DNA of 64,000 bases from Azolla caroliniana (lineage: Eukaryota; Plantae; Polypodiophyta): positions 744,001-808,000 of the forward strand of contig JBHGNT010000003.1 of NCBI GenBank assembly GCA_043228905.1, given 5' to 3'. The notes under the pieces were generated by a model that saw nothing but the letters and a program-made list of their open reading frames with translations, ran no database searches and was not told the origin of the DNA. Of this stretch, positions 1 to 20,040 are shown piece by piece (position 1 is the stretch's first letter; each line of letters opens with the position of its first letter). Position numbers and translations under genes: made by a program.

Positions 1-2493
1 AGGACCAAGTACGCAAGGGATTCATAAAGAACCCAAGATCGACCTTCCTATGAAATTTGATGGAACGCAATCACAATTTAGAGGATTCCTTAATAAGGTA
101 CTATTAGTCATTCAAATGCATCCTTCTCGATATCCCACCGATGCATCACAAGTGGGTCTAGTAGGCATGTTGCTAAGTGACTCAGCTTTGGCATGGTTCG
201 CTCTGTTGTTAGAAAAGGAATCTCCATTACTAAATAATTTTGAGGAGTTTATAAGCGAGTTTAAAGCTTGTTTTGGAGATACTGATAGGATAGCATAAGG
301 ACGACAATCAACAAAATCCGACGATTACATCAAGGTAATCACCCAACCTCCGCATACGTTATAGATTTCTGTCTACTTGCCTCCGATATCCCCTGGGATG
401 ATCAAGCATTAATGGAACAATTTCGATACGGCCGACGAAATTATGTCAAAGACCTACTCCTGACTTTCCCTGAAGAACCAAAATCGCTCACAGAGGCAAT
501 CAATTGAGCGGTAAGATGCAATAATCGGCTTTTCGAGTGACATTCAGAATGCCAATTACAAATGCCAAGGACCAGGTTGGAGCCCACATACACCTCGGTC
601 GCAACAAAACCATTTGCAAGGGAGTCATACAATGCATCTCTGGCAAATACTCCAATAGAAATTTTTGATACTTCTAATAGTACTAATAGCCCAAATCTAT
701 TAAACAAATTTGAAGTCCTTAGTCAATTAGAAGAAGAGTTAAACGACTAAGTTCATCCAAAATTGGAGCCGTTTGGTTGGACAACCCTAGATCTATGCAA
801 CCCATTAGTGGTTCCATTCCCTCTAAGCAAGTTAACAATGTGTTCTTAGCTCAAGTAATGGTTAATACTAAAAGTACTCCTCCAATACATGACTTGGCAC
901 TCTTAGATTCCGGTGCCAACTCTTGCTTCATGGATAGGAATTTTGCCTAAGCTCATCAGATATCCCTAAGAAAACTTTCTTGCCCAACATTTGTAGTAGT
1001 TATTGATGGTCGTCCCATTGCTTCCGAAAATATCGTAGAAGAGTCAGAGCCGATTCAGGGTGTCCTAGATAATTTGGTGTGTGTAGTATCATTTAATATA
1101 ATTAATAATCCAGATCATCCAATTGTCTTGGGGTTACCATGGTTCGAATTACATAACCTAGACATAGATTGGAGAACAAGAGAAATCCGGTATCGACAAA
1201 CCCAAGAACCTACTCATAGGATTGCAACCATTTTGCTACATCAATTGCGTGAGGAAGGATGCAAGGAAGCAATGTTTGTCTTCGTAGTATCAGTAAAAAC
1301 TTCCAACACTACTAAAGAGTAATCCACAGTTCAGCTTCCAAAGAAGTATCGTCATTATGCTGACGTGTTCGATAAGGTACAAGCCAGTACACGCTTCCTC
1401 ACCACCAACCGTATGATTGTCCCATTGATTTACAATCAGGAAAAGAACCACCATGGGGACCAATCTACAACTTGTCACCAACCGAGCTAGAAGTCCTTTG
1501 AGCCTACATAGAGGAGAATTTGGCAAACGGTTCCTTTCGACATTCGAAATCTCCAGCCGGCGCACCCATTTTCTTTGTCAAGCAAAAGGATGGATCACTT
1601 TGTCTCGTTGTAAATTATCGTGGCTTGAATAAGGTCATTATTAGGAATAAGTATGCACTTCCCCTTATCTCGATTCTTTTAGAACAGATCAATGGTGCAA
1701 AATTCTTCACAAAGATCGACTTACGAGGAGCATATAACCTCATACGGATTCGACCAGGAGATGAATGGAAGACCGCATTTCGCACCAGATATGGGCACTT
1801 CGAGTATACGGTTATGCCATTCGGTCTCACTAATGTGCCATTAGTCTTCCAACACATGGCAAATGATATATTCTGAGATCTCTTGGATATTTGTTTGATC
1901 ATCTATTTGGATGATCTACTGGTTTATTCGAAGACTCAAGAAGAACATGATTCTCATGTAGTATTAGTACTAAAACGACTTTGAGAACATGGTCTTTATG
2001 TAAAACTAGAAAAATGTAGTTTCGAGTGCAACCAGGTGGAATTTCTAGGCTATGTCATCTCCTCGAAAGGCATCTCTATGGATCCAGCTAAGGTCACAAC
2101 AACGGTAGAGTGGCAGACTCCATGTTCGTTGTGAGATGTGCAATGCTTTTTAAGGTTCGACAATTTCTACCGCAAGTTTATACAGGTTACTCAAAGCTTA
2201 TTCTACCTCTCACACAACTTACCAAGAAGGGGCAATCATTTGTTTGTTCTAAAGAAGCAGACATGGCTTTTGTGAGTCTTAAGAAAGCATTTACATCAGC
2301 TTCTATTCTAGCTCATGTTGATTTGAAAAAACCGTTCATCATTGAGGCAGACACGCCAGATTTCGCCCTGGGTAGCATTCTGTCACAACAAGGCGATGAT
2401 GAAAAGCTACATCCTATGGCTTTCCACTCACGCAAGTTTGACGCCGCTGAAATCAACTACGAAATACATGACAAGGAGCTATTAGCAATAGTG
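1..2493 (+). mobile_element. Ty3/gypsy chromovirus (Tcn1-like) LTR retrotransposon, degenerate gag-protease-RT-RNase H (5' part)
   Basis: Gag-like KFDGTQSQFRGFL...LLSDSALAWF (50-298); protease LALLDSGANSCFMD (~893-935); RT motifs [13 protein letters not shown]...[23 protein letters not shown] and YLDD (~1905); RNase H FIIEADTPDFALGSILSQ...YEIHDKELLAIV. Many stops and frameshifts. Homology ends abruptly near 2493. Confidence 0.95.
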
Positions 2494-2789
2494 CCCTCTT
2501 TTACACAATCATTGTTTTAAGTATAAAAGGTAATATTGCAATCCTTAATGTCATCATCTATAAATTAGTGCTCATTAACATCCATAAATTCACAACTCAA
2601 GAAATCTAGACAATATTCATAAACAATTTTGATAAATCCACAACTCCTAAAATGTAGACGATATTCATAAATTGTCAAACTTTAGATGTGAACATTAATA
2701 TATCAATTTGAACATAACACATAGTTATCAAGGTATCTATAATGTTATAATCATCTTCCTTATAAGAATTCCCCTTCAAAATTTGTGAA

Positions 2790-3365
2790 GTAAATGGCAT
2801 TTGCAAAGTTCAATTACCATCAACACAATTATTAATGGTTTTCTTCTAATAAATGAAGCACATATTTACCATAAGGTATCTTGTTGTGCAACATACATCT
2901 TTAAAAACCTCTTTTATTTGAAAAACAACAAGAGTTTTAAACATGAACACGATGTGTTGTATTGAATTGATGTAAAAAATAGAGTTTTCATCATAACTCT
3001 ATACAATATATTAAATTCATGTTCAAAGTTTTTTTACCGGATTTAAATAATAATAATAATAATAAATTAAGCTTGAGTTCATTGAAAAACCAGATTTTTC
3101 ATCACAATTCAATACAATGTATCGAGTTCATGTTTAAAGTAATTTTTTCTAATTTAAAAAAAAAACATTTTCAATTTGTTTCAATTTTTTTTATTTTTTT
3201 TCAAATTTTTTTTGTTTCTTTTTGTTTCTTTTAATTTCTTTTATTTTTTTTATTTTTTTTATTTTTTATGGAAAAAATAATAATTTTAAACATGAACTTG
3301 ATACATTGTATCGACTTGTGATAAAAACTCAGGTTTTTTCATCACTTATCAAAGCTCAAAAACAA
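2790..3365. repeat. Left arm of a long diverged inverted repeat (partner 8335-8890)
   Basis: 2790 gtaaatggcatttgcaaagttcaattaccatcaacacaa is the near-perfect reverse complement of 8851-8889. Reverse-complement similarity continues for about 570 bp. Confidence 0.88.
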
Positions 3366-3519: not shown

Positions 3520-5294
3520 GTATCGAGTTCATGTTGAAAGTGTTATTTCCGATTTATTTTTGTAAAATAATTACATTTTTTCCTATTTTATTTTGGTATT
3601 TTGTTTTTTTCTCTAAAAAGCTTTGAGCTTTAATAAGTGAGGAAAATAATATTTTATGTATTACAATGTATCGTCTAATGGTCAAGAGCTTGACCCATGT
3701 AGTAGAATGTCATGGGTTCAAGTCCTACATATCACGACATGAACGAAGTTAACTTTTTTACATGAACTCGATACGCCTTTTCAACATGAACTCGATACGG
3801 CGTATCGAGTTCATGTTTAAAGTCTAACTTTTTTACATGAACTCGATACGGCGTATCGAGTTCATGTTTAAAGTTTTATTTCCGATTTATTTTTTTAAAT
3901 AATTACATTTTTCCTATTTTATTTTGGTATTTTGTTTTTTTTTCTAAAAAACTTTAAGATTTAATAAGTGATGAAAATAATATTTTATGTATTACAATGT
4001 ATGGTCTAATGGTTAAGAGCTCCACCCATGTAGCACAAGGTCAAGGGTTCAAGTCCTAGCATATCATATCATCAACTAAGCTAACATTTTTACATGAACT
4101 CGATACCCCTTTTCAACATGAATACATGAACTCGATACGGCGTATCGAGTTCATGTTTAAAGTTTTATTTCGGATTATTTTTTTTAAATAATTACATTTT
4201 TTCCTATTTTATTATGGTGTTTTGTTTGTTTTCTAAAAACAAATTAAGCTTTAATAAGTGATAAAAATAATAGTTTATGTATTACAATGTATGGTCTAAT
4301 GGTCAAGAGCCCCACCCATGTAGCAGAAGGTCATGGGTTCGAGTCTTACTATATCATGTCATGAACTAAGATAACCTTTTTACATGAACTCGATACCCCT
4401 TTTAAACATGAACTTGATACGCCGTATCGAGTTCATGTTTAAAGTTTTATTTCAGATTTTTTTTTAAAAATAATTACATTTTTTCCTATTTTATTATGGT
4501 GTTTTGTTTTTTTTCTAAAAATAAATTAAGCTTTAATAAGTGATAAAAATAATAATATATGTATTATAATGCATGGTCTAATGGTCAAGAGCTCCACCCA
4601 TGTAGCAGAAGGTCATGGGTTCGAGTCCTACCATATCATGACATATAAAAAAGTTAGCTTTTTTACAAGAACTCGATACTAACTTTTTTACATGAACCCG
4701 ATACGGCGTATCAAGTTCATGTTGAAAAGCTAACTTTTTTATATGAACCCGACACGGTGTATCGAGTTCATGTTTAAAGTTATTTCGGATTTTTTTTTAA
4801 AATAATTACATTTTTTCCTATTTTATTATGGTGTTTTGTTTTTTTTCTAAAACAAAATTAAGCTTTAATAAGTGATAAAAATAATAATATATGTATTATA
4901 ATGCATGGTCTAATGGTCAAGAGCTCCACCCATGTAGCAGAAGGTCATGGGTTCGAGTCCTACCATATCCTGACATATAAAAAAGTTAGCTTTTTTACAA
5001 GAACTCGATACTAACTTTTTTACATGAACCCGATACGGCGTATCAAGTTCATGTTGAAAAGCTAACTTTTTTATATGAACCCGACACGGTGTATCGAGTT
5101 CATGTTTAAAGTTTTATTTCGGATTTTTTTTTTAAATAATTACATTTTTTCCTATTTTATTATGGTGTTTTGTTTTTTTTCTAAAACAAAATTAAGCTTT
5201 AAGAAGTGATAAAAATAATATTTTATGTATTACAATGTATGGTTTAATGGTCAAGAGCTTGACCCATGTAACATAAGGTCATGGGTTCGAGTCC
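3520..5294 (+). repeat. Tandem array of six ~280-335 bp units, each with a tRNA-like A-box/B-box cassette, a downstream oligo-T run and a palindrome
   Basis: A-box TGGTCTAATGG-like at 3671, 4002, 4292, 4574, 4906, 5240. B-box GGTTCRAGTCC-like at 3715, 4046, 4336, 4618, 4950, 5284. Palindrome aacatgaactcgatacg-g-cgtatcgagttcatgtt, e.g. 3783-3817. Confidence 0.92.
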
Positions 5295-5321
5295 TCACGG
5301 TCTAGAACTCACAATTCTTTG

Positions 5322-5369
<48 letters not shown>

Positions 5370-5954
5370 ATTCTCACTCTTAATCTCACATTCACCCACC
5401 GATTGTATACCGTTCGCACTCCTTGTATTGACCTCACGGTCTAGAACTCACAATTCGTAGTAATTTCTATGGAGGACCAATCCACAGAGACGTGAACCCA
5501 CGATGGCATATGATCGACGCCCTTCGAGTATCCACTTCATGTCGAGTTCCCTCATTTCAAGTGGAAGGCATTTGCAACGGCATCATCGGCATCCCAACAT
5601 GCCTTCAACATATTATCTCTCACTTCCTTACATCTTTTCATTGTAAGCATGGGACTACATTCGGTAGCCATGCATTCCCTTTTGTCTCTTTTAGTATGTG
5701 TGCATATGGACTACTTTCAATAGTTGGCATTTTGCATAATCTTAGTATTTCCTTTCCTTTCCAATGCACGGGATTACATTGTAGCCGGCATTTGTATTCA
5801 ACATATGTTCTACCCTTCCGTTGTAACCAATATACCTTGCATCACTCTCCCTCCCACTCACTTTCTCTTGCATGATATCCTTCCCCCATAGTCTCTCTCT
5901 ATATTAACTTTACCCCTCTTTTATCTTTACCTAATTCTCAACATACCCTTACCT

Positions 5955-6420
5955 ATTTTCAACTCTACCCCTTCCCTAACTTTTCGATATTTCCACTATA
6001 CCCTCCCCCTTACTTTTCCTTATCTTTAACTCTACCCCTCCCCTAACTTTTCCATATTTTCACTATACCCTCCCCCTTACTTTCCCTTATCTTTAACTCT
6101 ACCCCTTCCCAAACCTTTCCATATAATTTTTCACTATATCCTCCCCCTTATTTTTCCTTATCTTTAACTCTACCCCTTCCCAAACTTTTCAATATTTTCA
6201 CTATACCCTCCCTCCCCCTTACTTTTCCTTATCTTTAACTCTACCCCTTCCCTAACTTTTCCATATTTTCACTATACCCTCCCCCTTACTTTTCCTTATC
6301 TTTAACTCTACCCCTTCCCTAACTTTTCAATATTTTCACTATACCCTCCCCTTACTTTTCCTTATCTTTAACTCTACCCCTCACATTTTAACTTTTAGCA
6401 TCCTCCCCTAATTCAGTTTT
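5955..6420. repeat. C-rich minisatellite, ~66-71 bp unit, about 6-7 copies
   Basis: Unit tttaactctaccccttccctaacttttccatattttcactataccctcccccttacttttccttatc recurs at ~6024, 6092, 6163, 6233, 6301, 6367. Confidence 0.9.
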
Positions 6421-7143
6421 CTCCTATTTTCCAATTCTACCCCTCACCTCTTAATTTTTAGCCTCTTCACCTCATTCTCCTTTTTCCTATTTTCTAATCC
6501 TACCCCTCCCCTCACCTTTTATTGTTTCCAAATTTTATTTTATTTTATTTTTTCTAACCATCACCTCCCCCTTATTTTTCCTAATTTGATCTTCTACCCC
6601 TCCCGTTACTTTTTCATTGCCACTCTAACATTACCCCTACCTTTCCCTAACTCACGCCAAGTATAGGAAACGATTTGGGTGCGCTTGAATCGTTCTTGGT
6701 GATCTTTTCACTTCATTCCCACTTTGTCAATTTACTCTACCCCTGTCTCGTTCACTAATTTCAATCTACCCCTTTCCCCCTTCCTTTTTTCCAGAATTAC
6801 ATTCATACCCCTCCCTCTTTTAGTAAATTTCTCGTACCCCTCCCCCTTTCATTTTTCTTAATCTCACTCTACCCTTTCCTTCTCCACTTTAATTTCCAAT
6901 ATACCCTCCAATTCTTCCTACCCCCCTCCTTTTTTCAAAGATCTCCATACATTCTAACGTACTTCACCATCCCTAACTCCCACCTCACACACTTCTCTCT
7001 TACCCTTCCTCTCTCTTTCTCTCTCACACTCCCCTACATGTTTTTCAAATAACCCCAAAAAATCTTCTATCCCACACCAAATATATCAAACCCCATATCT
7101 CCTACATCATCAAATTTGAACACACACACACACACACACACTA

Positions 7144-7199
<56 letters not shown>

Positions 7200-7232
7200 G
7201 CACACACACACACACACACATCCTTATCTTCC

Positions 7233-7241
7233 CTATATAAA
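7233..7241 (+). promoter_or_regulatory. TATA box immediately upstream of hammerhead 1
   Basis: ctatataaa consensus, downstream of (CA)n(CT)n(CA)n and ~15 nt before helix I of the ribozyme. Confidence 0.5.
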
Positions 7242-7255
7242 CCCCTCCAATTCTA

Positions 7256-7314
7256 AATGGTCTTGTGCACTGATGAGCTCCGTAGGAGCGAAACTAGTTG
7301 CCACATCGACCATT
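7256..7314 (+). ncRNA. Minimal type I hammerhead ribozyme (copy 1, one-nucleotide irregularity at the cleavage junction)
   Basis: CUGAUGA (7270-7276), helix II gcucc-gua-ggagc, GAAA (7290-7293), palindromic ACUAGU helix III, helix I aaugguc..ugugca / ugc-c-aca..gaccauu. Confidence 0.82.
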
Positions 7315-7388
7315 TCTTTGTATTACTTTTTAAGTTTCTTAATATGAATTAGTCTTTAGTCTATTTCTCTCTCTCTAAACTTTGTACA

Positions 7389-7432
<44 letters not shown>

Positions 7433-7523
7433 ATTCTCACTCTTAATCTCACATTCACCCACCAATTGTATACCGTTCGCACTCCTTGTATTGACCTCAC
7501 GGTCTAGAACTCACAATTCTTTG

Positions 7524-7607
<84 letters not shown>

Positions 7608-7691
7608 ATTCTCACTCTTAATCTCACATTCACCCACCGATTGTATACCGTTCGCACTCCTTGTATTGACCTCACGGTCTAGAACTCACAA

Positions 7692-7744
7692 TTGGTAGCA
7701 CTGATGAGCCCCGTAGGGGGCGAAACTAGTTTGCTCATGACCAT
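7692..7744 (+). ncRNA. Minimal type I hammerhead ribozyme (copy 2)
   Basis: Helix I uggu-agca / ugcu-caug-acca, CUGAUGA (7701-7707), helix II gcccc-guag-ggggc, GAAA (7722-7725), palindromic ACUAGU, cleavage triplet GUU (7729-7731). Confidence 0.9.
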
Positions 7745-8034
7745 TACCCATCGTATTGTAATTGTTTCCTTTTTCTTAATGAAAATTAGTCTCCTTCTTA
7801 ATCTCTCCCTCTTTCTAATCTAGACTATTTAGCTTATGGTTATGTTTTACCTTGTTTCTAATTTTAATGTTAGTGATTAATCCCTCGTCTCTCTCTCTCT
7901 CTCTCCCTCCCCTTCCTCTATCTCTTATTATGCCTCACTTACACCAAGTTTGTCAAATGATTTGGGTGTGCTCAAATTATTCTTGGTGTTTCTTTTCACT
8001 TTATCCCCTCTTGCACTTAATCGTAAACCCTTTT

Positions 8035-8145
8035 ACCCTCTAAACCCTAAGCCCAAAACAAACACTAAACCCTAATTCTTAAACCCTAACCCTAAACCTA
8101 AACCTAAACCAAAACTCAAACCCTAATTCCTAAACCCTAAACCTT
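8035..8145. repeat. Degenerate interstitial plant telomere-like repeats (CCCTAAA/CCTAAA)
   Basis: taaaccctaa...aaaccctaaccctaaacctaaacctaaacc...cctaaaccctaaacc. Confidence 0.8.
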
Positions 8146-8334
8146 TTTTCTCTATAACTCTACATCTTATATATTGCACCCACCGATTGCCTACCGTCCG
8201 CACTCCTTGTTTCGACTTCACGGTCCAATTGAAAAGTTTAATTTTGGATTTTTTTTTAAAAATAATTACATTTTTTTCTATTTTATTTTGGTACTTTGTT
8301 TTTTTTTCTAAAACAAAATTGAGCTTTAATAAGT

Positions 8335-8890
8335 GATGAAAAAACCAGAGCTTTTATCACAAGTTGATACAATGTATCAAATTGATGTTTAAAAAATAAA
8401 ACAAAATCAATAAAAAACTATAAAAAATTGAAAAAAATTGAAACAAAATTGAAAACAATTAGAAAAAATTACTTTAAGCATGAACTCAATACATTATATC
8501 GAATTGTGATGAAAATTATGGTTTTCTAGATGAACTCAAGCACAATTTATTTTTTTATTTTTTTTTAAATCTAGTAAAAAAAACTTTGAGCAAGAATTCA
8601 ATACATTGTATGGAATTATGATGAAAACTCTATTTTTTACATCAACTCGATATAACATATCGACTTAATGTTTAAAATCTTGTTGTTTTTCAGATAAAAG
8701 AGGTTTTTTAAACATGAACTTGAATCGTACTAAAATCTTTGTTTTTACAAGAGAAAAAGATGCATATCGATAGTGCAAACAAGTATGCTGTACAATAAGA
8801 TACTTTATGGTAAACATGTGCATCATTGATTAACAAAAAACTATTAATAATTGTGTTGATGGTAATTGAACCTTGCAAATGCCATTTACA
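8335..8890. repeat. Right arm of the long inverted repeat (partner 2790-3365)
   Basis: Reverse complement of the left arm, e.g. gatgaaaactctattttttacatcaa (8620-8645) versus ttgatgtaaaaaatagagttttcatc (2967-2992). Confidence 0.88.
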
Positions 8891-9742: not shown

Positions 9743-11520
9743 AATGGAGGCATTTTTTAGAGGGATCTTCTTATCAAGTCACTATATTCAATGATCACAA
9801 AAATCTGGACTACTTTTGGAATGCTCATGACAGTATTAAATCGACGTCAAGCTCCATGGGCCTAATTCCTCACTCGTTTCAACTTCAAAATTACATATCT
9901 TCCTGGGAAGCAACAAGGGAAGGCAAATGTGTTATCACGACGCTCATATCTAGCACTAGGTCCCGGGAGCCAATATTCAATAATCAAAAGCAAGTAATCC
10001 TGGGACCGGCACGACTACAAGCAACGTGGGTTTTCGATACACCATTGGATTCCCACATTATCGATACCATATGTGAAGACTTGAAGACAAACGCTTTCGC
10101 TCAAGCCATTCTTCTAGCACAAATTGATCCCTCTCGAGCATCTTGTTCACAATCGCAACAACCAGGTATAGACTATCGACAATTCGAATGTCATGATGAA
10201 TTACTAGATTCTTTAAGAAACTCTTGTATGTTCTAATGGTTCTTGTCGCCTTCAAGTAGTCCAAAATTGTCATGACACATATACATGGGGGCATTTCGGT
10301 AGTACTAAAATGTTGGATTTAGTACAATGATCATTCTGGTGGCCTCATATGCGACGATTTGTCGAAGACTATATTCAAACATGTGATACATGTTGCAGAG
10401 CAAAGATGCCAAGACATCATCTATATGGTTTATTGGAACCATTACCAATTCCATGCAAGTTGTGGCAATCCATTTCTCTAGATTTCATCACAGATCTTCC
10501 AGTTTTAAAGGGATTCGATGCGATCTTAACAATAGTAGATCGATATATGAAGATGGCACAATTTCTGCCTTGTACTAAGGAAATCACTAGTGAAGAAACC
10601 GCCGAAACTGTCATGCGTGAGGTATGTCGGCATCATGGCCTCCCCGATAGTATTATCAACGACCGTGGACCCCAATTCGTCTAGAAATTCTGGAAGCATC
10701 TCTCAAAATGCTCAAGGTCACTTGTAACCTCTCCTCTGGCTACCACCCGCAAACAGATGGACAAGCAGAACGAACAAATCAAACGTTGGAATAATATCTT
10801 CGGTGTTTTCTAAGCTATCAACAAGATGACTGGGCGGATATTCTCCACTTTGACGAATTTGCATATAATAACTCTATCCACTCATCAACTAGGGTTACAC
10901 CATTTTATGCTTATATAGGCTATCATCCTCAGTGATGTGTATTCAAAACTCCAGAGTTACCCACAAATCCTTGTGTAGAGGATTGTTTGGAGTGGCTACA
11001 CAAGATACATGCAGACTTATCTACTCATTTACAACAAGCTCAACAAGCATAGAAGGATTATGCAGATCGTCATCGGCTTCCATTTAGATTTAACATTGGA
11101 GATCGGGTATGGCTATTACGACGACACATCAAGACTACTTGCCCATGTGATAAATTAGACTATCAACGATTAGGTCCTTTCCGTATTATCGGAAAAATTA
11201 ATGAGGTTGCTTTTCGTCTCGATCTACCTCCACAACTACGGATACATCCGTTTTTTCATAGTTCTCTTCTCGAACCGTATCAAGACAACACTATTCCAAA
11301 TCGTATTACACCACCTCCACCCCCGATCAAGCGTGAAGTAGGACCGGAGTACGAAGTAGCTATCATCCTTGATTCCAAGATTGTTCGCAACAAGCTCTAC
11401 TATTTGGTCGATTGGCTAGACTATAGTCCAAGCGAGTGTACTTGGGAACCAATCGAGAATGTGGTAAATGCTTGAGTTCTTGTTGAGGACTTTCATCGGC
11501 AATATCCCGACAACCCAGCC
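9743..11520 (+). mobile_element. 3' part of the same chromovirus pol: end of RNase H, integrase and chromodomain (degenerate)
   Basis: WRHFLEGSSYQVTIFNDHKNLDYF..LNRRQAPW continues the RNase H broken at 2493. Zn-finger CDTCCRAK; core WQSISLDFITDLP...IINDRGPQF; [14 protein letters not shown]; GPF motif; chromodomain EYEVAIILDSKIVRNKLYYLVDWLDYSPSECTWEP (~11345-11510). No LTR seen. Confidence 0.95.
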
Positions 11521-11534
11521 CGAGCTGCCGCAAA

Positions 11535-14500
11535 TGCTAGGGGTGGTAGTCTTGCACGGCTAGACCGCATATACATCAGCTCGTCCCTTGAAGAGTTGGG
11601 GGGCTCCTTCGCTATCTTGGCAAGTCTTACCTTCTTTGATCACCAGCTGATGAGACTAGACCTTAACCCACCCCGCGGTAGCAAGGGGAGTCTCAATGTG
11701 AAAATCCCCACAAAGATCATGAAGAGTGCAAAGGTGAAAGCAGGGTTGCAGAGCGTACGACAGGAGACCATTGTGAGTGAATCGGCCAGTGAGGATTTGC
11801 AGAAGAAATTGGCCCTCTCCTCCTCCTTTTTACAACAGGAAACCAAGTTGGCCCTCTAGCAGGCTAGAGCCATTGAAACAAAATTATGGAAGTCCGTTGC
11901 GGCCGCGCAACGATTGCTACAAGCAGACCCTAGTTGCAATTGGTCTAGAGCTAAGTTGGAGGAAGCAAAGATGAAGCTGCGGGAAAGGACGTTGGAGAAG
12001 AACCGAATGTTATTTCCAAGGACCGCAGCATGGTGAGCTAGAATAGACAACAAGGTCAACCATCATTTCTTTCACTCCAGGGCACCCAAGGGTGGTGGTG
12101 GACATATACAAGATCTGGGCAAACAAGATGGCTCAATAACGGAGGCCACACAATACTATCGCGACCTGCCCGCACCCATGCATATGCGGCAAATCATAGA
12201 GTTGGCCGAGAGGGCGTTGGCTTGCATTCACCCCAAGGTAACCCATGAGATGGAAGTTGTGCTCGATAGCCCCATTTCTCGATTAGAACTCTCAGAGGCA
12301 CTTAGGGATTTGCGGAGAGGAGCATGCCCAAGCCCCGATGGTCTCTCACGAGATTCTTTGGGAAACTGTCATCCCGTCATTGGAAGTCGGGATTCAGGAG
12401 ATTTGGACCTCAGGAGCGATGCCAACTGTCTTGGCTGAGGGGATGATCTATCTCATCCCTAAAGCGGCAGGGCGAAGCCTTGAGTTGCGCCAATGGTGTC
12501 CAATCACGATCCTTAATACGGTATACAAGATACTCGCAAAATTCCTAGCTAGGCAGATAGCAAGCTTCCTACCAGACATCATACATGAGAATCAAACAGG
12601 GTTTATCAGGGAGTAGGTGTATCTTTGATAATGTGTTGCTTCTCTGGGAAGTTATGGCATTGGCAGATCGCGTCGTATCAAGCTCGTCTATTCTGATGTT
12701 AGACTTTGAGAACGCCTACGATGGGGTGTTATGGCCCTTTTTGGAAAGAGTGATGAGAGCTATGGGCCTTCCCCAACAATGGAGGAATTGCACTTCTGCA
12801 CTCTATCGGATAGGTACCAGTAGCATGTTGGTATCTGGTGCTAGGGGCCACGCCTTCCAACTACATCGCTCAATGAGGCAAGGTTGTCCCCTAGCCCCAT
12901 ATCTCTATCTATTTGTAACTGAGGCTTTCTCTGCCTACTTACAAGCACCAAGCAGCGGACTGAGGGGATTGCCCATCCCCAATGTGACTGAGGATCTTCT
13001 GTTATTTGAATATGTCGACGATATGGTCCTTTTCTTGCAGGGCGATGATGCAAATTGGCAACGAGATGGACATCTTGTTGATGACTTTTGTCAGGCTGTT
13101 GGTGCCAAGGTCAATTGGGATAAAACCCAAGGCCTTTGGATTAACGAACAAGAGAAGCCAAGGTGGCATCCCCATGTTGATTTTGCATGGGTCCCTGATG
13201 GGAGGACATTCAAGTACCTTGGATTTATGATGGGGAGGGCAATCCCCAAGGGAGCGCAATTGTCCCATGTGCCAGCCAAACTAAGCAAGAAGTTGAACCA
13301 ATGGAGTAGGTCTAAACTATCCAAGCTGGTAGGGTTCTTATTGTGAACCAAGTGATGCTCGCCACCATGTGGTACTCAGTCTCCTACTGGATTATGAACC
13401 AAGTATGGTAGGCCTTGGCCTGACTCCTTGAATTGGTGTTGCACGAGCGAATCCCACCCAAGATGGCTTGTCATCCGGAGGAGAGGGTCACGAACTCCAT
13501 CTTGCGAGCATGGTGTCACGTACAACATCATTTGGTCAAGCACACGCCGGAGACACTAATCGAGTGGTCTAGAAAACCATTATTTTGGAACCCTCAAGTG
13601 CAAACAAGTGACAACATGATGTTAGGGCAACTTAAGGTCCTAGAATGGGGAAAGCGGGCGCAAACAGGTCTCCACTCTATAGATGATTGGAGACACATGG
13701 TGGCATTAGGAGGATCCCAGGAGGTCCCATTCCCTCCCCTCAAGGGAGCCATGAAAATGCGGAGATTGATAGTTGAGGCAGTTGATAGGGTTCCGATGGG
13801 GGAGGTGAGAGAAGATGCTTGGTTCAGTTTCTTTGATGAGGCTGGAAGGGTTAAGTTGCTGAAGGGTGCGAGCGAATCAGGAAGAGATACAATTTTTGGG
13901 AAGAGTAAGAGTAGGGGCTCTTGGCACCCAATCCGCGTGGTGGCGCAGGTTGATAACATCTGGAAGACAGACCTAGATGTTGCTAAGGTGGAACCCCATT
14001 GGAAGTTATCGGTATATGGTTGTTGTCCCCTCGTAGAACTAGAATGGGACCCAGGGGATTTCAGGTAGAAACATGATGGTAGATTTCGCCATTTCTTCGA
14101 GTACAACACTAAACTGGGCCGGACTTTTCAACTGTAGTTAGACGGCCCCTTAAGCAATGGTTAGTGTACATTGGGCATCCCTGATGAGGTGCTCATTACC
14201 TTTTGGAAGGGTCTCTGGCGTCTCCACATGCCGGGAAAGATAAAGTTTTTTTGGTGGCAAATCAGTCATAATGTGGTTCCCGTTGGTGAATGGCTAGGTA
14301 AACGTGGCGGCCCGTTAGGCTGCCCTCTTTGCCATTCATCTATTGAGACTTTGAGGCATTGTCTGTGGGATTGCCCTCAAGCTCAAAAGGTATGGAATAG
14401 AGTGACTCGCCTCCTTGCGGCATGTGAAGTGGAAGGAACAACATCGTGGAGTGTTGCGGCATGGATTGATCACTCCGTTGATAGGTGAACGGACGCCTTC

Positions 14501-18629: not shown

Positions 18630-20040
18630 GGGTCCACCAAATGGAGCCTCATTCCATTGGCACAGTTCGTTGGATTGTGAAAGGGGATCCATTAGACCCA
18701 TCCATCCCCTCGACTTGGGTGAACTAAGAACGTGACCAAATGTATAATTGTCCGAGCTGCATTATAGTCCTTACCTGACCAAATATAATTGTGCACCAAT
18801 CTCTGAATTTGATGTATACTTCCTTTGGAGATCATCTAGCACAATAGGTTGTACCATGTTGTTGCAAGCAATACATGATTTCCCACTATGATGAAAGTTT
18901 TTTCAAGCTCCAGGGTATTAACTTTTGTTGAATGGAGTGAATATCTTGTGCAATCATCCTCTCAGGAGGAGTGTTGAAGCCAATTTGGAAATCCAAATAC
19001 CCGATCCTTGCTCCTTAGTTGACCCATGTGAAATTGGGATCTGGGCACCAAGCTGGATATGGTTCATCGTATAGCCATATTGCACAAGATTTATGCCAAT
19101 TGATCATGGTGTTCGATCTCTCGCAAAACAAAGATAGTCCACTTTCTGCTTCTATAGATTCTCCACATCCCCTTGCATTTAGACTACGAAAAGGTCTACA
19201 AATGCTATATCCAAGAAGCATTAGTGTGAGTGCAACACAAGAAGACCAAGTAGCTTTAAATGCCTCACGTTGACGAAGCTAGAGAGTGTTTCTGTGTATA
19301 TAGAAATTGGGAGCATGCATCCCTATTGCACAGAGTGTGATATTTGGAAGAAGGGGCCACTTTCACTAGCTAGTGATGCGCGACTATTGATATTCTATAA
19401 AGGGTTGTAGTGCCTTTAATCCATGACTCTTGGAAGCAAAATTTCCCATCACTCTTTCTAGAAAATCCCAGCATACCCTATTGTATGCTTTCTTGAAATC
19501 TAGAAACACCACATCTACATGGTTGTTGGTATACTTGGCAAGGGCTACTACTTCCAAGAACGAGAAGAGGTTGGTTAGGATTCTCCTATTTTTAACGAAG
19601 CATATATGGGAGGGGTGAATGAGTTGAGGGAGAAGGGGTGTTAGGCGATGAGCCAGGATTCTTGCTAGAAGTGTGTAAACAATATTGAGAACAGTTATGG
19701 GCCACCACTTACTGATGTTGTTGGCCTTCCCACCACCTTTGGGAATGAGATGTATCATCCCTTGTCCAAATTCCTTCGACATATTACCAAATGTGATAAT
19801 CTCCTCATATTCCTGGAGGAGGTCTTCTTTAATAATATCCCAAAGGCTAGTGGAGAAGTGAGGAGTTAGACCATCGATATTGGGGCAACTATTTGCATCC
19901 AACTCGGAGAGTGCATCCCATATTTCAATGATCAATAGGGGGCGAAATGATCAATAGGGGGCGAGTAAGCCATGTGTTCATTTCAGTTGTGACTTTTTGG
20001 GGTATGCTTTGGACGAAATCTTTATATGGAAATCTGTTGT
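18630..20040 (-). mobile_element. Degenerate L1-like LINE RT fragment
   Basis: ORF 19384-19935: CPNIDG, IHLIPKGG, WWPITVLNIVYTLLARILAHRL, LDFKKAYNRVCWDFL. Downstream INWHKS and YLDFQIG motifs. Confidence 0.9.

Follow-up and report, generated by a model that had tools for sequence, protein, structure and literature searches.

The 2.9-kb insert at approximately 5296-8230 of the window (a 64-kb stretch of Azolla caroliniana assembly GCA_043228905.1, contig JBHGNT010000003.1, positions 744,001-808,000, + strand) is well supported as a head-to-tail pair of protein-less copies of a family that derives from Penelope-like retroelements (PLEs) lacking a nuclease. A probability of roughly four in five was assigned to the reading that both are ORF-less members of a multi-copy family derived from endonuclease-lacking PLEs. 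The upstream copy (part A, 5296-7693) is a 5'-truncated, more than unit-length copy of a ~1.8-2.2 kb ORF-less family. The downstream copy (part B, 7694-8230) belongs to a second family; it is a solo pseudo-LTR that begins at the predicted transcription start. The modules listed in the original prediction from the sequence are real, each being found on the + strand, in the order given and far above chance expectation.

Boundaries and target site

Other copies of the flanking tRNA-like 332-nt repeat continue differently from 5293 onward. The left junction (5293-5295, +) is a 3-nt microhomology (cct) common to this repeat unit and to the R module described below, so the element proper begins at ~5296. 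The right end was placed at 8229/8230, similarity to another copy stopping at 8229, and the 332-nt unit resumes at 8233, ~146 nt further along. The insertion target was a tRNA-like tandem repeat, of which ~146 bp were lost. The insert originally delimited as 5293-8228 is confirmed, but both of its ends had to be moved. Inspection by eye identified neither a target-site duplication (TSD) nor TG..CA ends in the insert, in agreement with the original prediction, and the features of LTR retrozymes are absent. CCCTAA words occur 13 times in the element and TTAGGG words not at all. The 64-kb window holds no PLE reverse transcriptase (RT), the two RT remnants present being L1-type LINEs, so that it is relatives in metagenome contigs that connect the insert to PLEs.

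Organisation of the two copies

Repeat comparison within the window located R copies at 5367-5456, 7430-7518 and 7605-7693 (+), a partial R consisting of its 25-nt end at the left edge (5293-5317, +), and a diverged copy, R' (8149-8230, +; invariant core CGCACTCCTTGT), which terminates both part B and the insert as a whole on the 3' side. R opens with ctctataa, closes with cacaatt and carries an invariant 12-nt core; a 30-nt R core gave four matches in 64 kb against none expected. A short hairpin in R displayed little covariation (three pairs, one compensatory change). (CT)n runs lie at 5326-5366, 7144-7197, 7391-7429 and 7528-7604 (+). In coding and non-coding relatives alike the R core is followed by tctATGGAGG. 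The R copies are present as predicted, but R does not stand alone as a repeat: it is at once the 3' portion of the pseudo-LTR and the 5' UTR directly upstream of ORF1.

The upstream pseudo-LTR of part A (5296-5456, +) is 5'-truncated and consists of the R end to 5317, a spacer, (CT)n 5326-5366 and R 5367-5456; 5293-5366 is 100% identical to 7495-7568, and 5326-5460 is 99.3% identical to 7564-7698. The internal region (5457-5880, +), previously described as 420 bp of unique sequence, is present but opens with a remnant of the ORF1 start (ATGGAGG 5469-5475, stop 5493-5495) that retains the ATG, eight codons and the stop; the remainder is non-coding. A blastx comparison of 5448-5552 with the ORF1 N-terminus gave 43% across a 35-aa stretch (E=0.001; the database was small), the longest ORF recorded for the region was 127 aa and its predicted fold was ordinary (z = -0.65). 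A C-rich, nearly G-free tract follows (5881-6645, +), comprising a 67-nt minisatellite at 5954-6381 (6.3 copies, with a CCCTAAC word in every unit) and 63-nt repeats at 6373-6513, and is collinear in the relatives L039, L047, L048, L009, L042, L031 and L050. The minisatellite had been called a G-run minisatellite; it exists, but is C-rich on the + strand, G-runs occurring only on the minus strand.

Hairpin H (6655-6701, +) has 18 predicted pairs and a conserved G-rich apical loop. Across 17 non-coding relatives the loop was invariant and the inner stem variable, and the hairpin was found only in ORF-less families. Its counterpart in part B, H' (7942-7988), shows 77.5% identity; the differences include one compensatory pair and four one-sided changes, which leave the pairing intact. 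A C-rich 3' untranslated-type region (6702-7233, +) ends in (CA)n-(CT)n-(CA)n microsatellites (7116-7222) and leads to the TATA box of the downstream pseudo-LTR (7234-7241, +), 36 nt upstream of the hammerhead CUGAUGA; in other copies position 7696 is preceded by the TATA box at a distance of exactly 30 nt. The coding relative L010 likewise has a C-rich tract, (CT)n, TATA box and hammerhead in this order. Beyond the hammerhead, the remainder of the downstream pseudo-LTR (7314-7693, +) comprises a tail, (CT)n 7391-7429, R 7430-7518, a spacer, (CT)n 7528-7604 and R 7605-7693; the R unit is duplicated here and part A ends at 7693. The independent copy L042, with flanks that differ from those in the window, likewise terminates at the R end. 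Where coding relatives have ORFs, part A has ~1.8 kb of non-coding sequence, rich in C and poor in G, that contains one conserved hairpin.

Part B starts 28-30 nt past the position of the TATA box in its closest relative, L012. Its tail, a (CT)-rich patch (7888-7925) and H' together occupy 7746-8039 (+), which is 90% identical to and collinear with L012 and 77-83% identical to L001, L004, L014, L021 and L036. They are followed by a degenerate CCCTAAA-like, C-strand telomere-type tract on the + (sense) strand (8040-8144; 16 units, 73% matches), the homologue of which sits between two R copies in L012. Junctions of an R end, telomere repeats and R were found in L019, L024, L028 and L052, and the R-end/(CCCTAAA)n/R junctions of five loci all have the polarity expected for priming on the telomeric G-strand. 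In the window copy the tract lies ~85 nt from the 3' end and is not terminal, which makes a role in priming doubtful there.

Hammerhead ribozymes

CTGATGA..CGAAAC was matched only twice in the window (7270-7299 and 7701-7731), against 0.03 matches expected. The first hammerhead (HHR1, 7256-7313, +) comprises the core 7270-7276, helix II 7277-7289, GAAA 7290-7293 and the palindrome ACUAGU 7293-7298, with a predicted cut after 7299; the second, that of part B (HHR2, 7694-7745, +), comprises the core 7701-7707, helix II 7708-7721 and the palindrome 7725-7730, with a predicted cut after 7731. Direct reading identified both as type I by CUGAUGA, GAAA, A15.1-U16.1 and a cleavable NUH, helix I being open and helices II and III closed. 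HHR1 lacks one U (U1.1) directly after the cut site, an extra T that all close relatives possess. HHR2 begins 7 nt before its core and is missing the TATA box and the distal 5' strand of helix I; L012, which has the TATA box and a full helix I, gave a helix I duplex of -17.6 kcal/mol versus -6.4 kcal/mol in HHR2. Judged from these losses, both would be expected to be poor cutters. An Rfam search returned no match at the gathering score; the only hits, of 23 bits, were ill-fitting ones to the type III model, since helix III is minimal in this type I motif. The low score weakens the formal call, not the structural reading. PLE-type variants with minimal helix III are poorly covered by Rfam models.

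A scan of metagenome contigs with a hammerhead-core pattern yielded 53 loci with 54 hammerheads, in which the core letters were fixed by the search pattern and the UG after the site, the inner helix II pairs and helix I were free to vary. TATAWA was present 34-38 nt upstream of CUGAUGA in 48 of the 54, and all except one (53/54) continue with UG, pairing with CA before the core. Helix II pair 10.3/11.3 was C-G in 10 and U-A in 11 of 21 variants, with no mismatches, and the helix I strands gave -14.2 kcal/mol when cognate versus -8.7 kcal/mol when swapped between variants. The motif is present in all relatives, coding and non-coding, and in contigs from public runs the core 7696-7744 is retained in other copies where both flanks diverge.

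Coding relatives and assignment to Penelope-like elements

Coding relatives share the end module of TATA box, type I hammerhead, tail, (CT)n and R, and are laid out as hammerhead, R core, ATGGAGG, ORF1, ORF2, TATA box and hammerhead, with ~4.7 kb from hammerhead to hammerhead in coding tandems. ORF2 is a reverse transcriptase of ~660 aa, 63-99% identical among copies, which gave a weak match to RVT_1 in a Pfam scan (L007, L010, L043, L053) that found no GIY-YIG or other nuclease domain in ORF1 or ORF2. The class of ORF2 was set by its homologues and their domain sets. Homologues without a nuclease were identified among Selaginella, Cryptomeria and Ginkgo proteins; the nearest plant homologues measure 580-626 aa and lack PF01541, and the nearest named ones include a Selaginella protein (39% identity, E=5e-111). 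More distant homologues of 800-950 aa carry RVT_1, PF28514, PF26215 and GIY-YIG, the canonical PLE architecture. Look-alikes in a protein atlas belong to rotifer and chordate clusters with the same families; a comparison with the PDB gave no match.

An RT in relatives, no nuclease, pseudo-LTRs, a hammerhead and a fixed 3' end with variable 5' truncation were found together, as in an endonuclease-deficient PLE. The original proposal of a non-autonomous, Penelope-like hammerhead retroelement is upheld by the end module that the insert has in common with elements coding for ORF1 and a nuclease-less RT of Penelope type. The long RT-coding copies whose search had been suggested exist in the metagenome relatives (ORF1 plus the ~660-aa RT, GIY-YIG absent), and the modules occur together there between independent flanks.

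Proposed mechanism and alternatives

RNA polymerase II would start ~30 nt past the TATA box, at the foot of the hammerhead, and the transcript would pass through the body into the downstream pseudo-LTR, ending ~14-16 nt after the short hairpin in R; such an RNA would be terminally redundant. The ORF1 protein and RT of coding relatives may recognise the shared end module and mobilise the RNA in trans, the invariant R core being the candidate mark of the 3' end. The RNA would then be copied from its 3' end onto a free DNA 3'-OH, at a telomeric overhang or a break, with no need for a nuclease. Nuclease-less PLEs attach to telomeric overhangs, with C-strand repeats adjoining the hammerhead (PMC8557442, PMC6431247). 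Variable 5' ends may reflect incomplete copying, and head-to-tail composites may arise when the RT, at the 5' end of one RNA, jumps to a second RNA as template. As helix III is only a palindrome, the hammerhead probably acts as a dimer, and its most likely role would be to trim read-through or tandem transcripts to unit length.

A wider scenario, which we consider rather unlikely, makes the elements the plant counterpart of animal non-LTR retrozymes, an ORF-less RNA lineage parasitising nuclease-less PLEs; the hammerhead would process read-through RNA, possibly to circles, hairpin H would recruit the RT or ORF1 protein, and insertion would occur at telomeres and chromosome breaks, so that the elements would serve as break-healing patches in a large plant genome. 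Less likely still is that the insert is such a counterpart in which RNA between two hammerhead cuts would be ligated into a circle and serve as the template, explaining the copies longer than one unit. This model has been suggested for PLEs (PMC4209133), and the type I hammerheads with palindromic helix III, the occurrence of copies exceeding one unit, and the L048 unit, bounded by two hammerheads, are consistent with it; one of the L048 hammerheads moreover combines two families, changing from one to the other within 15 nt that contain the cut site. However, in three subfamilies independent copies share a fixed 3' terminus, the R end, as would be expected of a linear RNA that stops at a defined point; part B begins uncut at the predicted transcription start; and the units measure 1.8-2.2 kb and carry pseudo-LTRs, as opposed to tandem monomers of 170-400 nt (PMC7229834). 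In contrast to such one-hammerhead monomers, L048 has its hammerheads 1755 nt apart, and in coding tandems the spacing is ~4.7 kb.

Copy number and independent insertions

Close relatives of both halves of the insert are among the 53 metagenome loci, the contigs of which probably come from the same or a close host, and contigs from four public runs cover most of the family at 85-99% identity; among the runs recorded as RNA, none contains the element. The claim of two diverged subfamilies in tandem is borne out, each being multi-copy elsewhere with different flanks. L048 contains a full unit between its two hammerheads. Flanks are unrelated among L009, L042 and the window, and these insertions are independent; their 5' starts vary (inside R, in the R core and in the tail), and the 3' ends of L042 and the window copy lie at the R end, L009 running off its contig. 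That the insert is a single coding PLE, internally deleted and rearranged and never amplified in ORF-less form, is very improbable: the ORF1-start remnant at 5469-5495 does show coding ancestry, but the same ORF-less interior recurs, collinear and 85-96% identical, at 7 loci with unrelated flanks and different 5' truncations, and hundreds of contigs from run X3 match at 85-99%. An LTR-type retrozyme, TRIM, Helitron or low-complexity DNA with chance hammerhead-like words, suggested by direct repeats with a ribozyme motif and the weak 23-bit Rfam type III matches, is still less probable. The repeats lack TG..CA ends, neither a tRNA primer-binding site nor a polypurine tract adjoins them, and there is no 4-bp TSD. 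The hammerheads have type I topology, and the type III matches skip helix I. The end does not fit the Helitron 3' CTRR, and more than 50 loci conserve the motif, its spacing and its helices, with covariation.

Significance and comparison with known systems

In the textbook view, plants have type III hammerheads in LTR retrozymes, and animals have type I hammerheads in PLEs and their derivatives. The element had been proposed as possibly undescribed in kind, which does not hold: Selaginella is known to have nuclease-less PLEs whose pseudo-LTRs carry type I hammerheads (PMC4209133), and non-autonomous PLE derivatives have been published for animals (PMC7229834; bioRxiv 10.64898/2026.07.22.740005). 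The insert is a new member of a known design and leaves the known categories unchanged. The natural variants bear on the role of the PLE hammerhead, as they include a copy starting uncut at the predicted transcription start and a possible join at the cut site, and the locus and its relatives provide natural material on what marks the 3' end and on how nuclease-less retroelements enter internal sites.

Angiosperm LTR retrozymes (PMC4918200) are likewise non-autonomous plant retroelements with a hammerhead in each terminal repeat and a promoter there; their type III hammerheads, true LTRs, PBS, PPT, 4-bp TSDs and Gypsy dependence are all absent here. Animal non-LTR retrozymes are also non-coding and have type I hammerheads whose helix III is weak and palindromic; they derive from PLE pseudo-LTRs, and a PLE RT is presumed to mobilise them. 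They differ in forming 170-400-nt monomers in long tandem arrays, with nuclease-bearing PLE partners and abundant circular RNAs (PMC7229834; bioRxiv 10.64898/2026.07.22.740005), whereas the present elements are 1.8-2.2 kb units with two pseudo-LTRs and a nuclease-less partner.

The Athena PLEs and Terminons of bdelloid rotifers are RT-only and form 5'-truncated head-to-tail chains (PMC6431247, PMC8557442), with a hammerhead near the 3' end accompanied by reverse-complement telomeric repeats, and ORF1 and ORF2 joined by a frameshift. There the telomeric stretch directly follows a 3'-terminal hammerhead, whereas here the hammerhead lies 190-500 nt from the 3' end, the end is set by the R module and the telomere-type tract lies within the pseudo-LTR of part B.

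The closest likeness is to the endonuclease-deficient PLEs of Selaginella moellendorffii (Gladyshev and Arkhipova 2007, as cited in PMC12477314), which are land-plant elements with no GIY-YIG, with type I hammerheads in pseudo-LTRs (Cervera and de la Pena 2014, PMC4209133) and with sense-strand C-strand telomeric repeats at junctions. Unlike these, the insert is ORF-less, its body consists of a C-rich minisatellite and a conserved hairpin, and the window copy sits inside a tandem repeat of a host from a different plant lineage. Among plants, a 2025 review (PMC12477314) cites telomere-associated PLEs from Selaginella only; the locus and its relatives reveal, in another lineage of non-flowering plants, diversified nuclease-less PLEs that have ORF-less parasites and numerous subfamilies of hammerheads.

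Organisation of the insert

All modules listed in the original prediction were found on the + strand of the window, at ~5296-8230, where part A (5296-7693) is followed head to tail by part B (7694-8230). Repeat comparison identified three near-identical copies of R, the repeat ending each pseudo-LTR (5367-5456, 7430-7518 and 7605-7693), together with a 25-nt R end (5293-5317) and a diverged copy, R' (8149-8230). The same strand carries four (CT)n runs, a C-rich minisatellite with a 67-nt unit (5954-6381), the two homologous hairpins H (6655-6701) and H' (7942-7988), a TATA box (7234-7241) and a CCCTAAA-like array with a 7-nt unit (8040-8144). The hammerhead motif CTGATGA..CGAAAC occurs just twice in the whole 64 kb against 0.03 occurrences expected, once in part A (HHR1, 7256-7313) and once in part B (HHR2, 7694-7745). 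The + strand of the insert is G-poor (7.2% G), with its G residues concentrated in R, the unique part, the hairpins and the hammerheads; the unique region folds no better than shuffled sequence (z = -0.65).

The TATA box is embedded in telomere-like words (CCCTA-TAT-AAACCC, window 7231-7245), and a CCTAAA word lies directly upstream of it in most hammerhead subfamilies among the metagenome-contig loci L001-L053; in appearance the putative pseudo-LTR promoter is close to an altered telomeric repeat or telo-box. Directly upstream of each (CT)n run stands ctttgtRcat (window 7519-7527, 5318-5325 and 7381-7390), a word similar to the 5' strand of helix I in HHR1. The duplication of the R-spacer-(CT)n-R segment may have arisen from slippage, or from a switch of template between (CU)n and the CU with which CUGAUGA opens.

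Relatives in public contigs

The element is mostly covered, at 85-99% identity, by contigs of four public runs with three organism codes, which were available as contigs only and of which none is on record as RNA. In these copies the hammerhead core (7696-7744) is conserved and both flanks differ. Other copies place TATAAAC exactly 30 nt upstream of this core, one has a helix I that is perfect over 11 bp, and the similarity of another stops at 8229. A scan of metagenome contigs, with a pattern that prescribed the letters of the core and both outer helix II pairs and left the remainder free, returned 53 loci, nearly all from one ENA study and evidently host plant DNA. L006 (contig AP72_2010_repI_A10DRAFT_1000029) was the sole match without TATA box, UG after the site and helix I (-6.4 kcal/mol), and probably arose by chance or is unrelated.

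Coding relatives

Many other metagenome loci are coding, several of them in tandem, in the order hammerhead, ~200 nt, ORF1, ORF2, C-rich 3' region with (CT)n, TATA and hammerhead. ORF1 encodes 650-880 aa and ORF2, which overlaps it in the -1 frame, ~660 aa; in many loci the overlap spans ~13 nt (L010:3129-3141, L043:3280-3292, L029:2487-2499 and others), a pattern that would fit a programmed frameshift. ORF2 identity is 63-99% across ten loci. Its match to RVT_1 was below threshold, and no PDB relative was found by sequence or by profile. A large protein search returned uncharacterised Cryptomeria, Selaginella and Ginkgo proteins without nuclease and, at greater distance, 800-950-aa proteins joining RVT_1, PF28514, PF26215 and GIY-YIG; Penelope-like elements canonically combine RT with GIY-YIG (PMC8557442). 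Look-alikes in a protein atlas were rotifer and chordate clusters of the same families. A Pfam scan of ORF1 and ORF2 from four of the coding relatives (L007, L010, L043 and L053) found no nuclease domain, and this absence, together with the homologues and domain sets of ORF2, identifies them by homology as endonuclease-deficient Penelope-like retroelements (PLEs). The long copies with a Penelope-type RT that the original prediction proposed to look for are present among the metagenome loci, with GIY-YIG absent.

The 12-nt R core, CGCACTCCT[T/C]GT, is invariant across coding and ORF-less relatives, and wherever the element continues tctATGGAGG lies 45-55 nt 3' of it, and in coding copies ORF1 (MEGLSSE...) starts at the ATG of this motif. 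As the R core is followed by this start codon, R serves at once as the 3' portion of the pseudo-LTR and as the 5' UTR of ORF1. ORF1 of coding relatives also contains in-frame CCCTAA hexamer arrays on the sense strand (L043:1798-2098, L007:1430-1466 and L010:1839-1881), which are translated as long Pro-Asn repeats.

A PLE partner within the window was considered and rejected, the RT remnants at 12585-14488 (+) and 19384-19935 (-) being L1-type LINEs. One of these carries RVT_1 and zf-RVT, and in the PDB they match LINE-1 ORF2p best; like them, an integrase-core remnant at 10349-10684 is unrelated to the element.

The ORF-less family of part A

The modules co-occur elsewhere: 5296-7693 has collinear counterparts, 85-96% identical, in seven loci (L039, L047, L048, L009, L042, L031 and L050). 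In L048 a complete unit lies between two hammerheads 1755 nt apart, in the order hammerhead, tail, (CT)n, R, unique part, minisatellite, hairpin H, C-rich tract, TATA, hammerhead. The window retains the ATG at 5469, followed by 8 codons and a stop, and the ~100 nt that come after it retain a weak alignment to the ORF1 N-terminus (43% over 35 aa); part A is thus a member of a derivative family in which the interior was replaced and the ORFs are missing. The flanks of L009, L042 and the window are unrelated, and their start points differ (one in the R core, one in the tail and, in the window, one in the R end), indicating that the family was amplified after loss of the ORFs. The 3' stop falls at the R end in both L042 and the window, and comparable 3' ends, 14-16 nt past the small R hairpin, occur in two further subfamilies (L017/L052 and L012). 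Apart from (CT)n length, part A has terminal repeats (5293-5456 and 7495-7693) that match each other at 99-100%, which fits a young copy from one terminally redundant template.

Hairpin H was found in ORF-less families only. The hairpin loops (window 6672-6686 and 7959-7973) carry an invariant GGGUGCG complementary to CGCACUC of the invariant R core (e.g. 5414-5425), with 7 bp possible, one of them G-U. This pairing is not claimed, its chance level being ~0.06 and covariation being impossible as both motifs are invariant.

Fold and state of the hammerheads

An Rfam search of the window gave no match at the gathering score and, at a relaxed E-value, two 23-bit matches to the type III model that omit helix I, plus noise. 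The type III reading was rejected, as these matches are mis-fits without helix I; on manual reading HHR1 and HHR2 are type I, the two flanks forming helix I. Helix II forms a hairpin of 5 bp, one of which is U-A in HHR1 and C-G in HHR2, and helix III consists of C-G plus a UA loop only, within the palindrome ACUAGU. The same layout, with a reduced helix III, has been described in dimer-acting animal and PLE hammerheads (PMC4209133).

In the metagenome loci, TATAWA lies 34-38 nt upstream of CUGAUGA in 48/54 hammerheads, and UG, which pairs with the CA preceding the core, follows the site in 53/54. At helix II pair 10.3/11.3, 10 variants have C-G and 11 have U-A, with 0 mismatches, and helix I reaches -14.2 kcal/mol with cognate strands versus -8.7 with strands exchanged between variants. 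Given this covariation and cognate pairing, the ribozyme fold is under selection across many subfamilies. In 7/7 close relatives ACTAGTT precedes tgcc; HHR1 lacks the t of this tgcc, U1.1, immediately 3' of the cut site. In HHR2 the 5' strand of helix I lacks its distal part (-6.4 kcal/mol versus -17.6 in L012). Both are predicted to be probably poor cutters.

The second hammerhead of L048 (L048:1774-1830) is a chimera of two families: its 5' portion and helix II match the part A type, its 3' strand and the downstream pseudo-LTR match the L034 type, and the switch falls inside a 15-nt stretch that holds the cut site. It would be equally compatible with joined cleaved RNAs and with recombination in a conserved stretch.

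Part B and telomere-type tracts

Part B is 90% identical to L012, whose hammerhead has a TATA box and full helix I, and 77-83% identical to five other loci. It starts 7 nt upstream of CUGAUGA, that is 28-30 nt past the position at which the TATA box of L012 would begin. We read part B as a full-length retro-copy whose template would have been a short RNA, initiated at the pseudo-LTR promoter and terminated in R of the same pseudo-LTR; we infer that it was attached to part A at the 3' end of the latter, a template jump being the simplest route.

In L012 a telomere-type tract lies between two R copies, and junctions of the form R-end/(CCCTAAA)n/R recur in L019, L024, L028 and L052, always with the polarity expected for cDNA primed on the telomeric G-strand, as has been reported of PLEs that lack a nuclease (PMC8557442, PMC6431247). 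In the window, the tract is a degenerate, inherited piece of the part B pseudo-LTR, of which the first R was lost. As it lies ~85 nt from the 3' end, it is not claimed to have primed the window insertion.

Insertion site

The insertion target is a 332-334-nt tRNA-like tandem repeat (window 4500-5295 and 8231-8345), which forms the left flank and has 3 nt at the junction in common with R; from 8233 the repeat unit resumes ~146 nt further along. Other copies of the flanking repeat continue with different sequence from 5293 onward. No TSD was found at the insert ends, which fits nuclease-independent entry at a break. Each repeat unit comprises a head with tRNA-like A and B boxes, a run of T and a long palindrome, and ARAGORN found no tRNA in the window despite this tRNA-like flank. 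The summed contig depth of the repeat in X3, one public sequencing run, is ~44,000 versus ~400-3000 for the element.

Comparison with known elements

The finding is real. LTR, Helitron and satellite readings were all rejected, and the interpretation first put forward, of a Penelope-like, hammerhead-bearing element present as two diverged subfamilies, is supported by the ORF-less relatives and by the coding nuclease-less PLEs. A literature search for Penelope elements in ferns found no paper, and Selaginella is the only plant cited in a 2025 review (PMC12477314). Nuclease-less PLEs with type I hammerheads have already been published for Selaginella (PMC4209133), as have non-coding PLE derivatives for animals (PMC7229834; bioRxiv 10.64898/2026.07.22.740005).
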